In this document: one piece after another, positions 127 through 46,323 of the stretch | Numbering within the stretch: the stretch's first letter is position 1 | Layout: each line of letters begins with the position of its first letter | NCBI GenBank assembly: GCA_964106645.2 | Contig: OZ067043.1 | Strand: one strand, 5' to 3' | Length of the DNA: 64,000 nucleotides | Source of the DNA: Podarcis pityusensis | Lineage: Eukaryota | Position numbers and translations under genes: made by a program | Notes under the pieces: generated by a model | Database searches by the model: none | What the model was told of the DNA's origin: nothing | The model's input: only the letters and a program-made list of their open reading frames with translations

Positions 127-363
127 ATGATGTGTGAGGTAATGCCTACCATCAGCGAGAGTGACCCCTTGGGGTCACAGCCGGGCTCTGATTCTGATGC
201 CAACTTTGAACAGCTGATGGTGAATATGCTTGATGAGAGAGACAAGCTGCTAGAGACTCTTCGGGAAACACGTGAGACTCTGTCTGTGACTCAGGGCCGG
301 CTACAGGAGACCGTGCATGAGAGAGACCAGCTGCAGAGGCAACTGAACTCTGCTTTACCTCAG
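127..363 (+). CDS. PPFIA4: liprin-alpha-4 coding exon 1 (MMCEVMPTIS...SALPQ)
   Basis: GCCATGATG start, liprin MCEVMPTI N-terminus, donor CAG|GTAAGA. A probable acceptor at 44-45 would put the exon start at 46. Confidence 0.95.
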
Positions 364-1978: not shown

Positions 1979-3857
1979 CAGGTAACTTGCATCTTATGCT
2001 TATTATACTGTACTTGAGTACAGCTTTATGCTGAACACCATTAAATGCATGAGGGGTGGGGAGGCAGAGTGAGGAAAAAATGGCCAGCAATCCGTCAGTC
2101 TTTGGGAGAGTGGTTGAGAGAGTAATTGGAGTGTGGAGAGAGAGTGGAGGAGGTGGTTGAAGAGGTTGAAGAGAGATTGGAGGAGGCCAGAGAGACTTGT
2201 GGAGGAGTTTGGAAAGACATTGGGGTAGGTTGGAGTGTGGAGGAGGTACTTGGAGAGAGTTGCAGACTGCAGAACAGCCCCCAAACACAAGGTATCATTG
2301 TCATCAGCTACTGAGAAACCAAAGAAGCAGAGGGTGGCTCCCATGCTGGAAGAGAAAGTGGTTGTGCTGGACTATTTGAAGGATGGCATGCCTATGTGTG
2401 CTGCGGCATGCAAATATGGACAGAACAAGTCCAGCCCCTGTGCCATCAAGGTGTGTGAGAAGGAGATTTGTGGGGAGATTTGTGGCAGCAAGCACACCAC
2501 TAACTGCAAAGGTGAGGAGCCAAGTGTGGGACAAGGCCTTGGTGAAGATGGAGAAGGCATTGAAGCTGTTGCTGGAAGACATGAACTGTAAATGTGTTCC
2601 TGTGGAGGGCAGCATCTTGCTGCAAAAGGCTCTCAGTCTCTATGACCACTTCAAACCTTCCACCACAGTTGTGGAAAGCCAGCCCAGTTTGGCATAACAG
2701 CTTTAAGATCCACTTCAACCTCATGAATGTCCAAATGACAGGGGAAACTTCATCTGCAGACAAGAGGCTACAAAAACATACCACATGCAACTAAAGATGC
2801 TTGCTGTACAGGTCTCCTTCCTGTGGTTTGGCAATCCAACAAAAAGGCCTGGGTGACTTTTCCATAATTTCTGGACTGGAAGGAACTGAGAGAGTCTCAC
2901 CTGGAATTTAAAGTGATGCTGCTTGTGGATACTGCTTCTGGGTAGCCCAAGCCCCTCTGCTTTGCACATAGTGCCCAATACGACTTCCCTCATCGAGCGT
3001 CTGGATCATGGTGTGATTCACTGCTTCAAGGTTGCTTACATGAAGCTCACCTTCTCTTGGATGATCAATGTGATGGATGCTGGAAGTCCTTCAATATTGC
3101 CCATTGCGTCACCTACATCAAACAGACAGTGAATGCAATCAGGGCTGAAACAGTGAATGCATACAGACAGAACATGTATGTGCATGATTTTGAGGGATTT
3201 CCAAGCATTGCCACTGAGCTTGAGGACATTGTGCAGATGGCCAGGCAAGTGGGTGGTGGTAGCTTTGTTGACCATATTTAGGGGAAAAGCTAATTGGAGG
3301 CCAACAGGTATTGACTGTTGAAGAGCTTGAGGAACTGGTCAGATCAAGTTCAGAATGTGAGGATGAGGATGGTGAGCATGAGACAGCAAGCTGGAAGCTG
3401 CATAACTTCTTATAAACTCTTTCAAGAAACAAAGCATGCAAATGATCTGATTCCAGAGTTTGATGCCTCCATGGAATGCAGCCTCAATATCATCCGTGAC
3501 ATTACAGCACTAGGAGACCATAAAAGGAAATGCCTGACAAACCCAAGAAACAACAGTGGCAGTTGCCAATCACCATGTTCCTGATGAAGAAACTACCAGT
3601 AGCAGCATTAGATGAGCCCACACAATCCACTTGTGGTTCTAAACCACAGTCAAGTACTTTTTCTTGTTCGCACTTAATCCCCCAAAGCATCAATCAGCAA
3701 AGAAGAGGAGGAGGGAAACTAAGAGCTGCATTTGTTCCTCATTGGTAAGTGCAGCAATGTTTTTTGAGGTTTCAAGAGGTTGCTCTGGCTTTACACAATT
3801 TTGCTTATACACTAAATGACCAGGAGCATAACCCTTGTGTAAGATGCGAGTTACCTG
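1979..3857 (+). mobile_element. Tigger/pogo-family DNA transposon fossil with disrupted transposase
   Basis: TIRs CAGGTAACTTGCATCTTA / TAAGATGCGAGTTACCTG, TA at the right flank (CA at the left). Frameshifted HTH (KQRVAPMLEEKVVVLDYL), CENP-B-type HTH (KMEKALKLLLED...ILLQKALSLY) and DDE segment (PNTTSLIERLDHGVIHCFK). Confidence 0.88.
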
Positions 3858-4947
3858 TATTACTACCTTTTACGTGAGGGAGAGCCAAATGTGAAGTTCT
3901 AAGCTAGCACATAGCACTGTAGGATATGAAGAATTTACCATCTTTTTGCAGTATGTTTATAAACAGATTGTCAAAAGCAGTGCTACAAACTCTTCCCAGC
4001 ATGGACTTTGTGTGTGCCCTTAGCACAAGTACCTAAACTCATGAAAGTTTTAATAAACCTTTTTGACACAATAATTGTATTCTGTGCAAATTCATAATTA
4101 GCATTTTTTCTACAGGTACTCTAACATTAATACTGTGATGCTATAGAGTGTTTATTCTCATGAAAATCCATCCCTGATAACTGAGGGGAAGCTGAACAGG
4201 TTTGGTACAGTGTTGTGGCGTGGTAGTACCAGCAGGTGGTGCTGAAATCTAGGGAAGACCCATAGCTGGTGCCCAGGGTAATGTTTTATTTATGCTAGCT
4301 TCCACCCCCCCCCCCCGATTCAGGTGGAATCGGAGGTGTTCATTTACAATGCTGCAGGAACTGCTTAATCATGCCTTTGCCTGTTTATTTTCTCCCAAAC
4401 TGTTCCATTCTGTTATGCGTTTTAATAAGTTAGGTACACGCATAATAACATACTATGTGTGTTCTTCGTTTATAAGAGAACTTGGATGCCTCCAGTCACA
4501 ATTCCAAGTATGAGCATTGTATCTTATCAACATCATTCATTGCTTCTTTTGTGCATTCTTTTCAAACCCAAACATTTATTCCTTGCTCACACCATTTACA
4601 GTTGATTCATATTATATCAAGGGCATTAAATACAGATTTACACTTGGAAGACAGTTTATATAGGGAAAAGATACAGTGTTTATACTTGGAAGCTTGACAG
4701 AAGGCATTCAAGTTCTCTTTCAAAGGAACAACATACATACATATGACAATATTTGTCATAGGGAAAAATATGTGTAATAGAGTTCCATGGTGTGGTTAAT
4801 GCCTCTGTCTTAAAGATGGCCTCCCTGGATCAAGAGGTCTTAGAAAATTACTGTCCCCTCTCTAGTATTCCTTTCCTGAGCAAGGTGATTGAGATGGTGG
4901 TGGCAAGCCAGCTGCAGGTACACCTAAAGGAAGCAGATTATCTAAAC

Positions 4948-6725: not shown

Positions 6726-7099
6726 TGGGGATGGTTGAGTTTACCTTCAGTGAAATGCAGACAAGATTATTTGAAAACAGTGTGAGTGGCTGTTACTAAT
6801 ATTGTGTGTCCAAGGCTCTGAGTCTCATGTGCATATCTCTCAGAACAGAAGAGAGCCCAGGGTTGGGATTAACCTTGGCAGCCATGTTCTGAGGTGATTA
6901 TTTAGCAGGTCAACCATGAACCCCAAACTGAGATGCTAGGCCCTGCAGCATCCTCAGAGGCTAGCAAAGGGTATGACAGCTCACTTTCTGGCTTGTAGTG
7001 AGAAGGGGGAGGACCTGTATTTTTAGAAGGGGGAAAGAAACTAAAATATTTCTTGCATTATAGTACTACCAACCCCAGGGTACTTCACATTCAGCTGAG

Positions 7100-8029
7100 C
7101 AGCGACAGCAGTCTGCAAGAGCTTGGCAAGGGAGGGAGAGCTAAGCACTCAGCCAGACAGGCTGCTTACAAGCCCAGTATGAGCACCTTCTGGCCTTGAC
7201 ACATTTTGGTCTTTCTGCTTCCTCACTGAGCTGAGTGACCTTCTGCCCTTGGCAAATTTCCAGTTGGGTCAGCCAGATCCAATAAATTCCAAGCTGGTCA
7301 AAAGGTACCATGGCCCTAAATGGGCTCTGCCGTAGCTGATTTTCAGGCACACGCCCCTTTGTGGCCTCACATGCTCAGTGCCCACGTCTTGGATTGAGAG
7401 CCACAGCTCTGGTGTCTGCACTCATCCATGTTGAGCAGCTGGGCAGAGAGCATGCCAGGTCAGCCAAGGGAGGGTTACGCCTCTCGGGCTCTGCAGCCGC
7501 TTGGATTAAGGGGCTATGCGGATTTACTCTCTGCTCTTGCTTCAATTCCTCTCCCTCCGACGTTCTGTATAGGGAACATGCAAGCAATGCAGAGCAAACT
7601 AGGTCATTGCAAAGGGACTTTGTGCATCTGTGAGATCCTCTGGGGGAGGCTGCTGGCTCTCCCGGCTCCCAGCTTCTGCTTGTAGCATTTTTGCCTCCCT
7701 TACCAAGTCGCACTGCTGCCTCCCCTGGATCTTGAAAAGGGATGTGATTAGCACAGGCAGCAGATGGGGAATTTCCGTGAGCTCCAAATGGCTCCTCTTG
7801 ACAAGGGCTTCGCTGACACTATTCCAGTGCCCAGTTCTCCTCCTCCTCCCGGACAGACAGATTCTGCAAGAAGCAACTTCCTGCTGGTTTGAACCTCAGG
7901 CACCAGGGTCTGCAGCAGGACATGGAACTTAGGCTGCCTCTACCCTTCATCTCTGGATTTAGTTGCTGTTCTCCCCTCGGCCTGGCAGAGCCATGGATTT
8001 ACAGATCAAGCTGGCTATGATTCCCCAGC
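7100..8029 (+). promoter_or_regulatory. candidate internal promoter / 5'UTR of the alternative first exon
   Basis: GC-richer segment with no repeat that I recognise and some retained CpGs. Contains CCAAT (~7279), a CACACGCCCC KLF/SP-like box (~7348), CAGCTG and GGATTA motifs, directly upstream of the candidate exon. Confidence 0.45.
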
Positions 8030-8101
8030 ATGAATACAGGGAACAAATCCATAACCAGCCATCTGTCCAATGGCATTAATTTCAGCATGTACATGTATCA
8101 G
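8030..8101 (+). CDS. PPFIA4: putative alternative first coding exon (MNTGNKSITSHLSNGINFSMYMYQ), in frame with exon 2
   Basis: ATG to a strong phase-0 donor CAG|GTAAGC, 72 nt. Resembles an alternative PPFIA2 N-terminus recalled from memory. Confidence 0.7.
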
Positions 8102-8362
8102 GTAAGCAGGATACCCCTTGCAGTGTCTGCCCACCATAGCTTTTCACCTTTTCTTGGTAGATGGAAATACTCCAGGCTCTTAAAGCAAGTGTTGAGGCCT
8201 GTCCAAACCTCCACAAGCAGCTGCTTTTCTTCTAGTTCTACTTCTTTCAGGAGTTGTGTTGGCTATAGGCATGAACTTCTGTTCATATTTGTTTCTGTTA
8301 AGAAATGGAGTATCAGTGCCATAGGCTACTCCAAATGTCTTGAGGGGTAGAGGGGGAAAGAG

Positions 8363-8507
8363 CAGTTTTTTCCCCTTTAAAAATGTTTAGGGGTACTCTC
8401 ACTTTCCTATTCATATAGAAATACTGCTCCTCAATAAGGCCAAACTTAGATTCACAAAATGTTTAGGGGTATGTGTCCCCCCATGTCCCCCCAGAAAAGA
8501 AGCACTG
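8363..8507. mobile_element. hAT-type MITE
   Basis: Perfect 8-bp TSD GGAAAGAG on both sides, termini CAGT...ACTG. Confidence 0.8.
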
Positions 8508-9524
8508 GGAAAGAGTATTGGGCACAGTTAGTGCTGTCAGGTGATTCCCCTGACAGATAAGACAAAGAATATTTCCTAGAGAGTTGCGTGGAGCAGAGAT
8601 TTCCTACCAAGCTGAACCCTTATATGAAAAGTTCATTGAGTACAAACAAAAGAGCAGTTGACCTTTGGGAGCTTCTGATTTATAGTGATCTGTTTACCGT
8701 AACATGCTTGAACAACAGAGACCTGCAGGTTTGGAACTTAGAAGTGGGAAACGCCTAAGTATGAACATATAGCCTGTTGGTTTTCCCCTGCTGTTTGAAG
8801 CTACTTTGTGAGCTGCCCACTGTACATCATGGTAAAATGGCTAGTTCTTTGCTCTATTTTGAAGGGTCCATGCGAACTAAGGTCATACTTTCAAAGGGCT
8901 GAAGTTTTTCCTTCCTGGTGGACCATAGGTGATTTACCTTTTTGGGAACTAATTGCCATAGCCCCAAAGGCACTTCCCCAAGCACACTATGAGGGCTGAG
9001 AAATTCCCAGGGAGTCTATAGTCACCAGACTCCTAGAATTTTGATTGGTAGCACCATGGAACTGGACAAAACACATGGCATGCATGTGGGACTGATACCT
9101 AAAAATTCACGCCTATCAAAAAATGTGTGAAATTTTGTTTTCCACCCTCAAACCTGCCTACTCCTTCCTTTCATTTCTGTCTTTATGTATGCATACCTCT
9201 CAGGCAGCCTGTGAACAGACAATACATTTTCCTTCAGGAGCACGACCAGTGTTGCTGCTGCAACGTATTTGTATTTATTTTCCTGTGACCACCCTGGGCA
9301 TCTATTGGATATGCCCAAGAGAAATAATAAAGTCTCTTTACCTGCTCTATATGCTTGACTAGTTTTGGAATTAGGCTGTGATTAGCATCATGGATTGTAC
9401 CTGGCAGTCTCATTTTTATTCTCCCCTGATATCTCTCAGAAAGGTGACTGCATAATGGTCTACCTTACATCTTGTCATTTTCTAGCCCGACCTAGCGGCT
9501 TTCCCCCTGACAGTGGGATTGTAG

Positions 9525-9775
9525 GATTGTAGGAAAAACCAATCTTTTAAAAGGGAATTAGACCAATTCATTTACAATAAAGCTACTAGTCATAGCGGCT
9601 ACAAGCAGCCTTCACAGAGCCAGCAGACATCTGAATACCAGTTGCTGGGGACTAACCATGGAAAAGAACTATTGCCCTTATGTCCTGCTTGTGGTCTTCC
9701 CCTGAGTATCTGGCTGCATAATGTGGGAAGCACAATGCTGGACTAGATAGGCCTTTGGTCTGATCCATCAGGAGA
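9525..9775 (+). mobile_element. old CR1-like LINE 3' fragment
   Basis: AAAAGGGAATTAGACCAATTCAT ... GCTGGACTAGATAGGCCTTTGGTCTGATCCA resembles the end of CR1 ORF2 and its 3'UTR. Confidence 0.5.
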
Positions 9776-10844
9776 TGGGTTCCTTAAGTCCAATACTGAT
9801 TCATTTGGACATTCTTTTTTCTTCTTTAAAATTCTCCTATGTGCACACTGGACTAATTATTATCTGTGATGCAGTTAATAACACTGATTGCTTCTGTATC
9901 TGTTTTGATCCACTATGCCTGGCACAAACAGTTATTCCAATTAGATGCCAAAAATGTGACTTACATCCTAAATGGACCCAATTCATTCTTTGAACTCTGA
10001 GGCAAATCAGTAGGGAAAAGAAGAATTGTCCTTGTATCTGAAAAAAATGTTCCACATTCTCAGTCATTGCTGTGTTTGGCTTTTCCGATATTAAGAAAAT
10101 CACTTTACATAATTGATATGCTCTTAACATTTAAAATCACAAGTTCTTTTGTTTTTGCTCAAACAGTTGAGGTGTGACAGATACCCCTTAGGGTAGCCTG
10201 TGCCATATCCACTTGGGCTTTAAAATTAAACTTGATACCTTCAGCTACACCGGGAAGCAAACGAGAAGCAAGTATAGGTTTTAAATCTCTGATATAAAAT
10301 GCGTCCAAAAATTCATTGCTTTCGAATACTTGAACAATCACATTTGGTGTCTTCTGACGTTTCTCAGTAGTCTTAAGTTTTTAAGAGTTCTTAATTGAGC
10401 CAAGATTAGGCATCCGTGTTTCACTTTCTAATCCATTTATAGGTGTCCCTGCCTAATCTGGAAAGCTTATGGCTATGCAATTTACCATCCAAGGGTTGAG
10501 AGAAAAGGTCTGGTAAGGTCTAATCTAAAATGTCTGTTGGAAAAAGTATAAGCTTATAAGGGATTTCAGTAACTTGAGGATGAAGGACTTGTTAAACTTG
10601 TCCACAAGACAACCATCTTCTAACGTGGTTCCAAAGTGACTAGGCAGCATAGGACTGAAAGGTAGTATTTAGCTTAACATTAGAATTAGAATAAATCTCC
10701 CAAATCTTCATCTAATTGAATGAAAGCTCATGCCATAATAAACCAGTTAATCTCTAAAAGCTGCAGCCTTTTTGTTTTCTTGTTTCTGTGCTAGGCGATT
10801 AGAACATCCTGCCTGAGGATACTGTAGAGACATTCTTCCTCAGT

Positions 10845-12350
10845 GGGATCATTCCATATCAAGTGATCCAACTTTTAAATCTCATGTCATCTAATTTTCT
10901 TAATATTTTGTACATTTGTTGAATGATCAAATCTAAGTTAAAATCTAAAATTTTAATTTTTTATCTCATCCTGTTTTTGAGTTATGAAGGTTTGAAATTT
11001 CAGAAATTTGACAATTTTGGCCTTCCCAGACCTACACAAAAACCTTAAAAGTTTAGCCCAAGATTGAGATATTTCAAGACCTAAAAAACGAATCTTTCAG
11101 AACTTCATGAGCCTAAATATATGTCATATGATGAACTCACTCTAAAATTTAAATTTAAGTTACAAAATTTTAAAGTGATGAAAAAAATTAATATGATTTT
11201 AAAATTCCAAAAAACTTGTACAGTACTGATCATTTAATATTTCTAAGAGCTACCTGCAGAATTTCATCCTGGGATCTCAATGGGATCACGTTACAAAAAA
11301 TAAAATAAAAAATTGTTAATACACGTCTGCCTTATTGGGTTCTATTTAGGATAAATGGGTCTTCTCAAAGAAATATATAACAGAATAAACAAGGCCACAA
11401 CCATAATATTAGTTGCTTCAGGCATTTCATCATAAAGTTATTTAATTAAAAAGTGTCTGAAAAGCTAGTCAGGCTTTTCTTTTAAAAATGTGTTCCAAAG
11501 CTGAGTGATAGCTTGCTATTGCATGATAGAATTAACACTTTGAAAGAATTATTGTTAGTAGTTTATTTCATGAAGCACAACAAAATACATATCAAGCAAA
11601 ATTATGACACAGCTGGAACTGTTTAACTGGTGCTGAGATAACATCTCTTCTATCCAGTTCTTATTTTCAACAAATGAGGAGTACAGAAAAGAAGAAATGT
11701 TCCTGAAAGACGCTTTGAAAGAGTGAAAGTGATCAGGGGAACACAAGGATTTCATTGCTACATTTCATCCAACAGAAATTGTGACCAATGTGTACTCCTT
11801 TAGCAATGAGAGTGAGAAGTTTGACAGTGAAGGAGGTATAAAATCTCTGGATATGACTGAGATAACTGGGTATGTGACCTGTGAATACAATAAAACACGT
11901 TGCTTAACTTAGATGCTGTTGGTGGACTATGAAAGTGAAGAAGCAACTGTGACCTCCTTACACCTGCCAGGGCCAGCATCATCATTTGTTTACCCATCTA
12001 GTCAGGATGTACTTTAGGTAGGGCGAGCACAAGTTCCAACAAGCGTTGAACCAAGGACTGCAACTGGCCGCACTCACACTTTGACAAAAAATGAACGTGC
12101 AACCAATGCTCTTGAAAAGTGTTTGGTGTAAAGTATAAATAATGTTTTCAGCCCCATTTAATATGTAAGAGTCCCTCCCTCTAATTTTGTTTGATATGCA
12201 TTTTGTTGTAGCTCTTATAAACATTAATTAATACATTTTTAAAAATTATATTAATTTTAAAAATCGCCTTCTAAATTTTTAAATTTTGTAACTTACATTT
12301 TATATTTTGAGTAATTCCACCATGTGACAAATCATATTAAGGTCCTAATT
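10845..12350 (+). mobile_element. AT-rich DNA transposon fossil, Sola2-like, with C-terminal transposase remnant at ~11598-12131
   Basis: Left end GGGATCATTCCA. Long inverted repeat ~11110-11210 vs ~12235-12345. Broken peptide ...ELFNWC*DNISSIQF...RFERVKVIRGTQGFHCYI...GYVTCEY...LHLPGPASSFVYP...PRTATGRTHTL. Confidence 0.65.
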
Positions 12351-12641
12351 CAACGCTTTAACCACTTTAAGCACATAGCTCATTTTCAGGCATGAAGGCA
12401 ATCAGTAGCAAGCAACATTCCTATAGGTGGCGGTGCAGTCTCTTGAACCTAAAGATAAATGCAACTGAATTTAAGGAAATGCTTATTTAACTTAAAAAAA
12501 CAAAGTTATTAGCCAAAAAGTAAAGTACAAGTCAGATGCTCTACATGCACTAGTGTCTGATCACAGGGTTGATGATTAGGGCAATTTTCATTTTGGCTAC
12601 AGGAAATTTTTCATGAACAACTCTTTGACGGTTTAAACATA

Positions 12642-12928
12642 CAGTGGTGCCCCGCAAGACGAATGCCTCGCAAGACGAAAAACTCGCTAGACGAAAGAGT
12701 TTTCCGTTTTTTGAGTCGTTCCACAAGACGAATTTCCCTATGGGCTTGCTTCGCAAGATGAAACGTCTTGCGAGTTTGTTTCCTTTTTCTTAAAGCCGCT
12801 AAGCCGTTAATAGCCGCTAAGCCGTTAATAGCCGCTAAGCCGCTAATAGCCGTGCTTCGCAAGACGAAAAAACCGCAAGACGAAGAGACTCGCGGACTGG
12901 ATTAATTTCGTCTTGCGAGGCACCACTG
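12642..12928. mobile_element. Tc1/mariner-superfamily (Tigger-like) MITE, young
   Basis: TA TSD, TIR CAGTGGTGCC(C/T)CGCAAGACGAA, intact CpGs, internal 18-bp tandem GCCGCTAAGCCGTTAATA x~3. Confidence 0.92.
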
Positions 12929-14241
12929 TACAAGTTGCACAGTCTCTCTGTTGCCATGCAAGGCCCAGAGAAAGAGTTTGAAGTAAAATTTGTCACTTGC
13001 CTTAATCCCTTTGTATATACATCCTTACCAAATTTGGACTTCAGAAAAAAGGTGTGAAAACATTTTTCTTTCTTTCTCCTCTTCCCCCTCCCAGTTCACA
13101 AGGAGACTTCACATTCCCAGAAATTAAGATGATACAAGATGGGATATTGATCAGTTAGGGGACATGTTTGTCTGTTAGACTAAATCTTAAAAGCAAGCAT
13201 GCAACATTCCATCACACTTAGGGTAAAGAAACAGAAACCAGGATATGGTTATGCAGGAAGGAGTATGGTTTATATACAGTATGTGTGGTGTCACTAGGGA
13301 GGAAATGTAAAGCACTGCATTTGAGTGGGGAGGGAAGATTAGAGCACCAACACATTGCTGGAGAAGAGAAGGGATTCAAGGGAATAGTTGGGGTAGTGTT
13401 CAGGGGAGAAAGCCAAGGGTGGTGGTGGGAGTGCCAGAGAGATGCAACAAAAGGGCAGGGGATAAAGAGAATGAGAACCAGGATGTATTGGATGGGCATA
13501 AAGAAGAGAGTCCTGGTAAGAGTTCTAGGTTGTGTTGAGGACAGGATAGAGCTGAGTTGAAGGGATGGGGAGAATGATGGAGGATGCAGCTAAAATCTCT
13601 CCCTTCCCCCCATGACATTTCACAGTCATTTGCTAGCTGGCAAAACACAGGGCATTTTTAATTTAGATCCATAACATCACAGATCTAGCTCCATCAACAA
13701 CTATTCTAGGGATGTTTCTGCAGTTGCCATTATATGCAATCAAGAAAAGAGACTTAGCATTTCAAAAGGATTCTAAAATGTCTCAAAATACCTGCTACTC
13801 CTAGATTTGTCAAGACTTGGATGCAAGCTTTTCCTGTGCCATGGATTCCTCAAGATGGCATTGGGAAAACAGTTACAGGGACATGAGAAGAGCCTTACAG
13901 AATCAGAACAAAGGCCTGCTAGTCCTTTAATGCTGTATATGGTTTAGGATGCAGATATTTGAAGTATTACAAGGTGAAGTTTACTAAATGGCATTGAACA
14001 GAAGTGTTAGTGGTAAAGAATGTATAGTTCATTGCCATCACCATTGCAAGGTACCTTTACATAGGTTTGTGGTTGGTCAGATTTGTCATGGGTTTTTCTC
14101 CGTTTGTGTTCATATTGTCTTCCCAACTGACTCATCACTACCAGCTAGTGAGATGACGTGTGTGAGTAACCATGTCTTCAGCATGAGATACTCCAGATTT
14201 TAAAGATCCACTACAGGAGCCTTCTTCCCAATGTTCTAGAT

Positions 14242-14353
14242 CAGGCATGTACAACAGGTCGATCGCAACTCTGGGCAATGACACTGGGTAGATCACTGTC
14301 AGTTTTTTTATACTGGGAGTAGATCGCAGTCTCTTGGGAGTTGGATATGCCTG
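14242..14353. mobile_element. 112-bp hAT MITE nested in a palindromic MITE
   Basis: Perfect TSD TTCTAGAT, TIR CAGGCATGTACAAC / GTTGGATATGCCTG. Confidence 0.88.
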
Positions 14354-14670
14354 TTCTAGATAACAATTCATATCATTCCTGACCATTGGTTGCTCTGGCC
14401 GGGGCTGTTTAGAGTTGGAGTCCAACAACAGCTGGAGGGCACCAGGTTGGGAAAGGCTGCTTTCACAGAACTTCCAGCCATGTTAGCTAGTAAGTCCTCC
14501 AGAGTTATCAGAAAATGATCAAGATCCATCAAAATCCAGTGTTTTATTTATCAATACCTTGATGGGAAACCACTGGAAATGTAATGAAAGCTGTTTGGGC
14601 AGCAGTTCACTTGTTTAAGAAATGCACATGAATAACATTGGAGAAGGGGCTGAAAATGTACCCTGCTTCT

Positions 14671-15049
14671 CAGTGGCATGCGGTGAACTCTTTTCATAGG
14701 GGACAGTTAGGGCCAGAAGCACCAGTATGTGAGGCCGATTCAGGGGGTCAATGTCCTGATGTGTGGGCATCACACCTTCCTCCTTAATCTGGGCAGAAGC
14801 TTCCTGGGCTTTGGAAAGGAAGCACCAGGCCTCTGACAGGATGCTGGAGCCCTGCTGCCTCATTCCCAAAGCTGGACAGGCTTTGAGAAGGTGGCTGGAG
14901 GGCCCTGCACCTCATCCGAGAATCACACCTCCCTCCCTAAGCTGGGCAGAAGCTTCCTGGACTTTGGGAAGGAGGCACTAGGCTTTAATAGTCTAATATA
15001 CCAAGAACATTTAGCCTAGTCCCCCTAGTCCATTGACCACACACCACTG
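14671..15049. mobile_element. hAT non-autonomous element with an internal ~60-bp direct repeat
   Basis: Perfect TSD CTGCTTCT, TIR CAGTGGCATGCGGTGAA / TTGACCACACACCACTG. Confidence 0.85.
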
Positions 15050-17029
15050 CTGCTTCTACTGACCCAGCGTTGAGAAGCAAGTCTGCTCCTGTATCTAGCC
15101 CAGTGCCTTCGTTTATATAGTTTCTTTCTGGATTCTGTTTCTTGGTCACTCTAAACATCTGCTGGAATGTTGTGAATTGGATTTTCTGCATATGCAGATG
15201 ATGAAATCTGAGACTAATTTCTACTCTTGAAAGTCAGGAATATTAAAATTAACATGAAGCTTATTGGATCCTTTCCGATTAACTTGTCTGAATCCTTTTA
15301 CAGACTGCCACATCTAATATGCATGTATTCAAGCTAGGCCTCTAGTGTCTCAGTGAAAAATCAACATGCACACAGGAATTTTTCTCCTACTACTACAGTA
15401 TCTTAATTTGTATGCCAAACTACAAAGCAGTGATAATTCAGGATGACTGCATAAATGCTGTTCTCTTGTTTGCATTCTGAAGCTCAGGAAACATAGCGAC
15501 AGGCCCACTCGGTTCCCTTCAAGCTATTTCAAATGCTTCATCAAGTGGGTGGGTGGGCTCCCGGCACAGTTCTTATTTTGGTTGCCTGTTTTGAACTCTA
15601 CTTGGTTCAGCCTTGCCCTTTCAGAAGTAATCCCTGCAGCTGTTAGAATTTACCAATTGGAATTTACTTTTGTAAGACCTCCAGTTTAGAGAAGGGACAA
15701 TGAGGAAGGGCTGGCTGGCTGGGAAGTGTCTGCTGTTATTTTAATTTCCCTAGCCGCCTGCCTTAACTACCTGCTTTGTTGTGCATATCTTTGTGTTGCC
15801 AGGGAGGTTCTACACCCCTAGCACAGACATAATCACTGCAGCTTCTGTAACAAATGAGTCCATGTATGTCCCTGTTGTTATAAAAAGCAAAACAGTAGTT
15901 ATTGAATACTGTTGTGGGAAACATACTTCAGGCTCATTGTGAAGATTGCATTGACGGGCACCTTTGACGTTGCTCTCTGGCTGAGACAACAATACTTTGA
16001 CTTACTTCCGTTTTTTTAGATGTGTAGCCTGCCTCATACCAAATGCTCAGGGCAAATAACAGTATTTGTGTTTTAAATAGTTCAGATATTGTTACTTGCT
16101 AGAATTATTTCTACAAGGCATTGGGTATAGCAGAAAAAGTGAAGAAAATCTATTGAACACAGTGGTAGACAAGTGATAACCTGCCTCACTGCCCTACTTC
16201 ATCCTGTCTTAGGGTATTTTGAGACAGGTTTAGCCTTTCATTGGTTCTAATTAATGCAAGGCTCATTGGTGTGTGACCCACACCAGTTCCTTAGGGATGC
16301 TGCATGGAGTATGTGTGTATCAGAAGTATCAATAATCTATAAAGAAACATTGACTAAGAAATTATCTGATGCTGAATGCATAGATCTTTAGAGGGCCAAG
16401 ATAAACAAGGAATTCTCCTTTACACAAACACCTTCATGACTGAGATAGTTTGTATTAAAACTATTTTACCCTACCTAAAGACCCCCCCAAGCTTACGACT
16501 CTTGGAAGCTGAAATTATTTCAGGAAAAGTCCAAAATGGAAGCAAAAGCTAATCTGAAAGGAAACAGTAAGAAGTGCCTGCAAATTTCTTTGTTGTGTTT
16601 AGTTTTATGATGTCTGAGTTCCACTGCTAAAAAAGTAGATGCCCACATTGCTTATTTTTAAAGAGGGTATTCTGAATTTTGCTGGATGTGGGAGAAAAAC
16701 AAAACAAAAAACTGTATATCTGCACTACTGTGATTCACATATGGCAGCAGCTGGCATGTAAGTCTCAAGCTGTTTTCTGTCCAGAAGATACACTTGATTG
16801 CTGGCATGTTGCACTGCCTTAACTGATTGGAATGAAATGCTTTACCTGCTGTTTCTACTTTCTTTAATTGGTACCAAGGGGAGTAGGTGAGAATCTCTTA
16901 CCCAGGGGAGAACTTCTGGTGGAACCAGTACTGCCTTATTAGAATGCATTGGGGTGGCAGTTTTGATATTGGCTTTGCAGATACATAAGCTGGCTGGGTG
17001 ACAGATTAGTCTGAATATCATTTATTATA

Positions 17030-17256
17030 CAGTGGTACCTTGGGTTACAAAGGCTTTGGGTTACAAACCCTTCGGGTTACAAACTCCACTAACCTGGAAG
17101 TAGTACCTCGGGTTGCAAACTTTGCCCCAGGATGAGAACGGAAATCGTGTGGCAGCAGGAGGCCCCATTAGCGAAAGCGCGCCTCAGGTTAAAAATGGTT
17201 TTGGGTTAAGAACGGACCTCCGGAATGAATTAAGTTTGTAACCCGAGGTACCACTG
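17030..17256. mobile_element. Tigger-like MITE (CAGTGGTACCTCGGGTTAC family)
   Basis: TA TSD and TIRs. Same family as 22277-22537. Confidence 0.92.
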
Positions 17257-17576
17257 TATTTCAAAGTACTGTAATTCACTAAACAGAACCTTTGCTTACC
17301 TTTGAAGTGTCACAAAAACCCACCAAGGAGTCCCAGAATGAAAAGTTGTAATACTTTTCTGTTGTTGTTAATTCTGATGGTTGTTTTGATGACTTTCATC
17401 CTCTTTTGTGTGACAGCCCATTTTTGGTAATACAAGTGGATCCTCTTGGGTGCATGTGATGCAACCATGTTTTTTCATGCAGATGCTTCTTTTTCTTCAT
17501 AAAAAAGCTAACTTAAAGCTGGGGAATCTGAGGAAACCTGGCTCCGCATGATTGTAAAAATGTGATTGCTTTGCAG

Positions 17577-17678
17577 GAATTTGCAACACTGACTAGGGAA
17601 CTCAATGCATGCCGAGAGCAGCTGTTGGAAAGGGAAGAGGAAATATCTGAACTGAAAGCAGAGCGTAATAATACAAGG
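17577..17678 (+). CDS. PPFIA4: coding exon 2 (EFATLTRE...NNTR)
   Basis: ttgcag| ... AGG|gtgagt, 102 nt. Confidence 0.96.
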
Positions 17679-46167: not shown

Positions 46168-46323
46168 GTCAGCCTGGATAGCTCAGTAGGTTAGAGTGCA
46201 GTGCTGATAACACCAAGGTTGCAGGTTTGATCCCCATATGGGATAGCTACATATTCCTGCATTGCATAGACTAGATGATTCTCAGCATCCCTTCCAACTC
46301 TACAATTCTATGATTCCATGATT
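46168..46323 (+). mobile_element. tRNA(Ile)-like-headed SINE with CR1-type tail
   Basis: Second copy of 1725-1865, tail ATTCTATGATTCCATG. Confidence 0.88.

Follow-up and report, generated by a model that had tools for sequence, protein, structure and literature searches.

Does the first intron of this lizard gene hold an alternative first exon that would give a liprin-alpha protein a different N-terminus and, if so, what would the resulting isoform lose? The window, i.e. the whole 64 kb stretch of DNA analysed here, carries, on its plus strand, a liprin-alpha gene whose exons map from 127 to ~57,000 along the whole of a fish liprin-alpha-3. Exon 2 starts with the residues T-L-T-R and contains R-E-E-E, as in the named liprin-alpha-4-like protein P0142, whereas A-L-T-K and K-E-E-E stand at these sites in named alpha-2 proteins. 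Because exon 2 resembles the named liprin-alpha-4-like protein and not the named alpha-2 proteins, we assign the gene to PPFIA4. Its canonical first coding exon (127..363, plus strand) has 79 codons in phase 0, is 85% identical to duck at the amino acid level and encodes an N-terminal motif and one long helix (H1). The shared exon 2 (17577..17678, plus strand) is preceded by AG, is in phase 0 and encodes the start of helix H2 (7D2G, 7D2H).

The alternative exon in intron 1 and its conservation in birds

The coding part of the alternative exon (8030..8101, plus strand) begins with an ATG, spans 24 codons with extra in-frame methionines at residues 20 and 22, and runs in phase 0 into the splice donor at 8102..8107 on the same strand (CAG/GTAAGC at 8101/8102), just as a preliminary description of the locus had read it. 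By a simple consensus score, this donor ranks fifth among the 3,611 plus-strand GT sites of the window, and its GTAAG is kept in both bird loci discussed below. The upstream sequence had also been described as GC-richer and repeat-free, and this holds: GC is 0.53 at 7001-8000 against ~0.42 for the window, and a repeat-type pile-up of reads or contigs was not found in 7039-8102. In the lizard this GC-richer kilobase is without CpG-island character (observed/expected 0.24). Just downstream of the donor, a high-copy repeat fragment occupies 8366-8507, where hundreds of unrelated reads and contigs stack.

We observed orthologues of the exon in two bird loci. The duck-like locus (L004), whose exon-1 protein clusters with Anas zonorhyncha, carries the orthologous exon at 4520-4594, with exon 1 before it and exon 2 after it. 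The orthologous exon is also found in a metagenome contig (L014) that is 75% identical to duck at the amino acid level and that we take, from its sequence, for a second bird. A search in birds had been proposed as a check, and its outcome was positive in that neither locus has lost the ATG, the open frame or the donor, with 58-62% amino acid identity to the lizard peptide, and the sole indel in the lizard-bird alignment of the exon is a frame-preserving one of 3 nt. The blastn matches (E 4e-8 for duck, 2e-12 for L014) cover little more or less than the stretch between the ATG region and the donor. Throughout the 17 kb of intron 1, the significant lizard-duck matches are this exon, the blocks 7503-7546 and 7738-7771 and an element at 10395-10460. 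Since both bird loci contain the orthologue together with collinear upstream blocks, the exon, judging from these alignments, dates back at least to the common ancestor of lizards and birds. Two fish loci taken for ppfia4 by sequence (L011, L013) contained no homologue in the ~10 kb upstream, which is part of the intron.

Searches at the protein level, each made with a single exon, returned no candidate for the exon peptide among proteins of 58-185 aa, a search that is uninformative for full-length isoforms. Searches with exon 2 returned nearly exclusively genomic read-through ORFs, with the alternative N-terminus in none, and Pfam, Rfam and atlas searches gave no match for the alternative exon.

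Splicing of the exon and its place in the transcript

Fourteen sequencing runs, guessed to be RNA, contained a small share of the window, and four of them were compared with 6800-8600. In run X11, from a related species, a contig of 1,478 nt (depth ~9) aligns to 7923-8102 with 7 differences in 180 nt. Past 8102, 28 of the 30 letters that follow are the same as in exon 2 (from 17578), the next-best site in the window reaching 19 of 30. This contig is the predicted junction of the alternative exon with exon 2 in the related species, the 8101 to 17577 junction that the preliminary description had proposed to search for, and was seen in one contig from one run labelled RNA by guess. The joining is in frame, as had been claimed, with a phase-0 donor meeting a phase-0 exon 2. 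The first letter of the contig, 7923, sets the minimum 5' untranslated part of the exon (7923..8029, plus strand). A second X11 piece covers 7665-7835, and runs X1 and X8 contribute low-depth pieces between 7039 and 7998, which do not count as independent support because both runs were chosen for containing words of the window. The raw-read run X23 has just 260 aligned bases here and the junction is absent from it. We considered these bases as junction reads and rejected this, as the per-bin counts (36+122+102 = 2 x 130 bases) fit one unspliced fragment better; they are best read as both mates of a single unspliced fragment at ~8002-8131 that crosses the donor. The alternative exon is thus near-silent in the X23 sample.

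Could the open frame have arisen by chance, next to a cryptic donor, with the junction being a product of rare mis-splicing? In 15% of simulated introns matched in dinucleotide make-up (n=60), a donor of comparable strength was preceded by an in-frame ATG at a distance of 10-40 codons; therefore, the pattern of ATG and donor proves little when taken alone, and the single junction contig and the near-silence in X23 point the same way. The orthologues in two birds, whose matches stop almost precisely where the predicted exon does, largely refute this explanation, and together with the junction contig they set the exon apart from a chance pattern, so that we consider mis-splicing very improbable. 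PPFIA4 intron 1 holds a real, conserved alternative exon. Whether it opens the transcript is a separate matter. It might instead be an internal exon, with an upstream acceptor that joins it to a further non-coding exon, such as a mini-exon, or to exon 1, and in that case the conserved blocks upstream would be an intronic enhancer and not a promoter. Candidate acceptors, i.e. AG sites with pyrimidine tracts, occur at several positions in 7264-7989, and the coverage upstream of 7923 comes in separate pieces. Against an internal position, the X11 contig is collinear from 7923 through the candidates at 7963 and 7989, the 50 nt before the ATG have no pyrimidine tract in common with birds, and an in-frame stop at -12 would terminate a frame arriving from exon 1. 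Among the joints and loose ends listed, none lies 5' of the exon, although contigs cannot show where a transcript starts. Given that no upstream joint is listed, that the contig crosses the nearest candidate acceptors and that the stop at -12 blocks the upstream frame, the alternative exon is likely a first exon, and we regard an internal position as improbable.

The reading that we favour, at a probability of roughly 70%, is that an internal promoter starts a transcript whose first exon would end at 8101 and splice to exon 2, as does the junction from the related species, and which would encode a liprin-alpha-4 lacking H1, its translation probably being dampened by an upstream ORF.

Putative promoter and coding signal

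The preliminary description had proposed an ancient internal promoter. What we found are promoter-like blocks conserved in lizard and birds; the promoter itself we infer from them. Four blocks upstream of the exon, all given on the plus strand, are collinear in both birds. Block 1 (7443..7465), weak alone (E 0.5), has an AGGTCA nuclear-receptor half-site at 7457. Block 2 (7494..7546; 80-84% identity, E 3e-6 and 4e-7) contains an OTX/CRX-type GGATTA at 7503-7508. Block 3 (7592..7618) carries at 7596-7606 the only match to the RORE consensus in the 64 kb window, intact in duck and with one mismatch in L014. Block 4 (7738..7795; E 0.02-0.06), which may be promoter-proximal or part of the 5' UTR, holds a TGATTAG as well as a GGGAATTTCC site; L014 matches the two exactly, and in duck they are degraded. 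The names of these motifs (half-site, OTX/CRX, RORE) follow consensus sites and denote predicted binding sites. Further into the intron, a second conserved non-coding element (10395..10460, plus strand; 79% to duck, E 6e-11) has TAATC motifs and a conserved TTTATA and is also present in L001. Conservation does not extend to a lizard donor close by, at 10513, and the element is a possible enhancer or further promoter.

The internal promoter would thus lie at ~7440-7800 and would be at least as old as the exon, and an OTX/CRX-class homeodomain factor and a ROR-class nuclear receptor would be its most likely drivers. These predicted motifs point to a neural cell type, possibly retinal, pineal or cerebellar, and expression in the retina, pineal or cerebellum is a tentative prediction from the motifs alone. 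CRX and RORB motifs are known to form strong photoreceptor elements (PMC10473580), liprin-alpha4 has been proposed to belong to the ribbon (PMC8998116), and its expression is strongest in cerebellum, with expression in muscle and testis too (PMC8602034). In those parts of the supplements of retinal and pineal isoform studies that were checked, Ppfia4 and Ppfia2 were not found.

The coding signal of the exon differs from that of its canonical neighbours. Lizard and L014 are identical at 71/75/71% of codon positions 1/2/3 in the alternative exon, and the corresponding values against duck are 86/96/49% for exon 1 and 91/97/44% for exon 2. As the third position is no more variable than the first two, the exon has no protein-type signature and appears constrained as nucleotide sequence and weakly as protein. 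An overlapping out-of-frame ORF (8017..8079, plus strand) starts with an ATG at -13 in the lizard and both birds, spans the predicted start and ends inside the exon; in the lizard it has an alternative start in the same frame at 7993 (-37), in strong context. In all three species the ATG at -13 reads ATGA and thereby places an in-frame stop at -12 just before the start, which leaves 8030 as the earliest in-frame start that could be used. Shortly after the out-of-frame ORF ends, the conserved codons Met 20 and Met 22 supply additional starts in frame. Translation from the exon frame is plausible, and would proceed from the ATG at 8030 or from the methionines at residues 20 and 22, giving a short peptide instead of the 79 N-terminal residues; the conserved overlapping ORF probably dampens it.

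These features would also fit a real alternative first exon with a mainly regulatory role, as promoter, splice signals and upstream ORF, in which the ORF takes most ribosomes and little protein lacking H1 is made. The equal conservation of all codon positions agrees with this, as do the out-of-frame ATG at -13, which each of the three species has with a purine at -3, the lizard's ATG at -37 with its strong context and several more upstream ATGs. Nevertheless, lizard and birds agree in start, frame, phase and donor, and the sole indel is in frame; moreover, Met 20 and Met 22 provide starts downstream of the ORF. Weak protein constraint is also frequent in the evolution of short N-terminal peptides. 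We consider a mainly regulatory exon unlikely and favour the reading in which an isoform lacking H1 would be made.

In L014, a palindromic double GGATTA/TAATCC site lies at 2981-2992, inside the bird exon, and weaker versions are present in duck and lizard; it may have to do with the exon being constrained as nucleotide sequence.

The predicted isoform and its relatives

The isoform had been described as lacking the first 79 residues, including part of the coiled coil involved in self-assembly. The 79 residues would indeed be replaced, but the assembly helices would stay. CC1 of liprin-alpha consists of three helices, and its self-assembly is explained by crystal structures of H2 and H3, which form tetramers (PMC8044993). 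Exon 2 matches the H2 structures 7D2G and 7D2H from their first residues, which places the boundary between exons 1 and 2 at about the loop between H1 and H2, and exon 3 matches solved H2/H3 fragments of liprin-alpha-2. For exon 1, with its predicted helix H1 at residues 22-76, a match to a solved structure was not found. In comparison with the known CC1 module (7D2G, 7D2H, 7D2E; PMC8044993), exons 2 and 3 therefore correspond to the solved H2 and H3 fragments, whereas H1 is modelled there and a natural form lacking it is not described; the exon found here would replace H1. The predicted isoform would lose the N-terminal motif, which is nearly invariant as far as wasp, together with H1, and would keep H2, H3, CC2 with its RIM and ELKS sites, and the SAM domains; any effect of the loss of H1 on assembly is an extrapolation from this.

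The preliminary description also placed the exon before the separation of PPFIA2 and PPFIA4. Human PPFIA2 has tissue-specific variable first exons, with five FLJ cDNAs, four from brain and one from testis (PMC2780955, Table 3), and is thus a liprin-alpha gene with alternative first exons used in a tissue-specific way. It is a paralog, and neither the sequence nor the position of its first exons is given there, so the likeness is one of kind only. In fish ppfia2 (L010) there was no homologous exon in the 55 kb upstream of the exon (3 kb of it N), nor was there one in 13.8 kb of finch PPFIA2 (L012), the upstream canonical exon being reached in neither; no contig taken for human was among the loci compared. 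Against the human PPFIA2 isoform peptide quoted in the preliminary description, the L014 peptide would agree a little more closely than the lizard one in the region of the H..NG motif, and the putative extra N-terminal Met of the human peptide would fall close to the conserved ATG at -13, which is a lead at most. An extended reading, in which exon and promoter predate the alpha2/alpha4 duplication and OTX/CRX and ROR factors drive a cell-type-specific liprin-alpha lacking H1, e.g. at ribbon synapses, with altered assembly or autoinhibition and tuning by the upstream ORF, is doubtful as a whole. If it were true, it would offer a natural test of the roles of H1 and of the invariant N-terminal motif.

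Alternative first exons are a common feature of genes. To our knowledge, studies of liprin-alpha have relied on engineered fragments or on the full-length proteins. An isoform that occurs naturally, is conserved and has neither the N-terminal motif nor H1 would be a ready test of the stretch that is least characterised within the most conserved region, and could account for differences in liprin-alpha-4 between cell types. On a practical matter, the alternative exon corrects the gene model of PPFIA4. A description of such an exon for PPFIA4 was not found in the papers searched, and public predicted isoform sets may already contain it. N-terminal truncation from an internal promoter is known for RBM20, which has an intronic start site (PMC13198548), and photoreceptor-specific alternative start sites have been described (PMC5480877); in contrast to these, the PPFIA4 exon has its own in-frame ATG and peptide.

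Two side observations concern repeats in the window and relatives of the gene. A dispersed repeat, probably a tRNA-derived SINE, has its tRNA-like head at 1725-1823 and 46168-46266, with an Rfam match to tRNA at 1729-1802, and the region at ~2230-3750 contains broken reading frames that may be a pogo/Tigger-type transposase fossil. Sheep, goats and their relatives have many partial, diverged liprin-alpha-1-like copies (P0121, P0214-P0264), some of them predicted beside TNF-receptor or Frizzled domains, which are a lineage-specific expansion unrelated to the PPFIA4 window.
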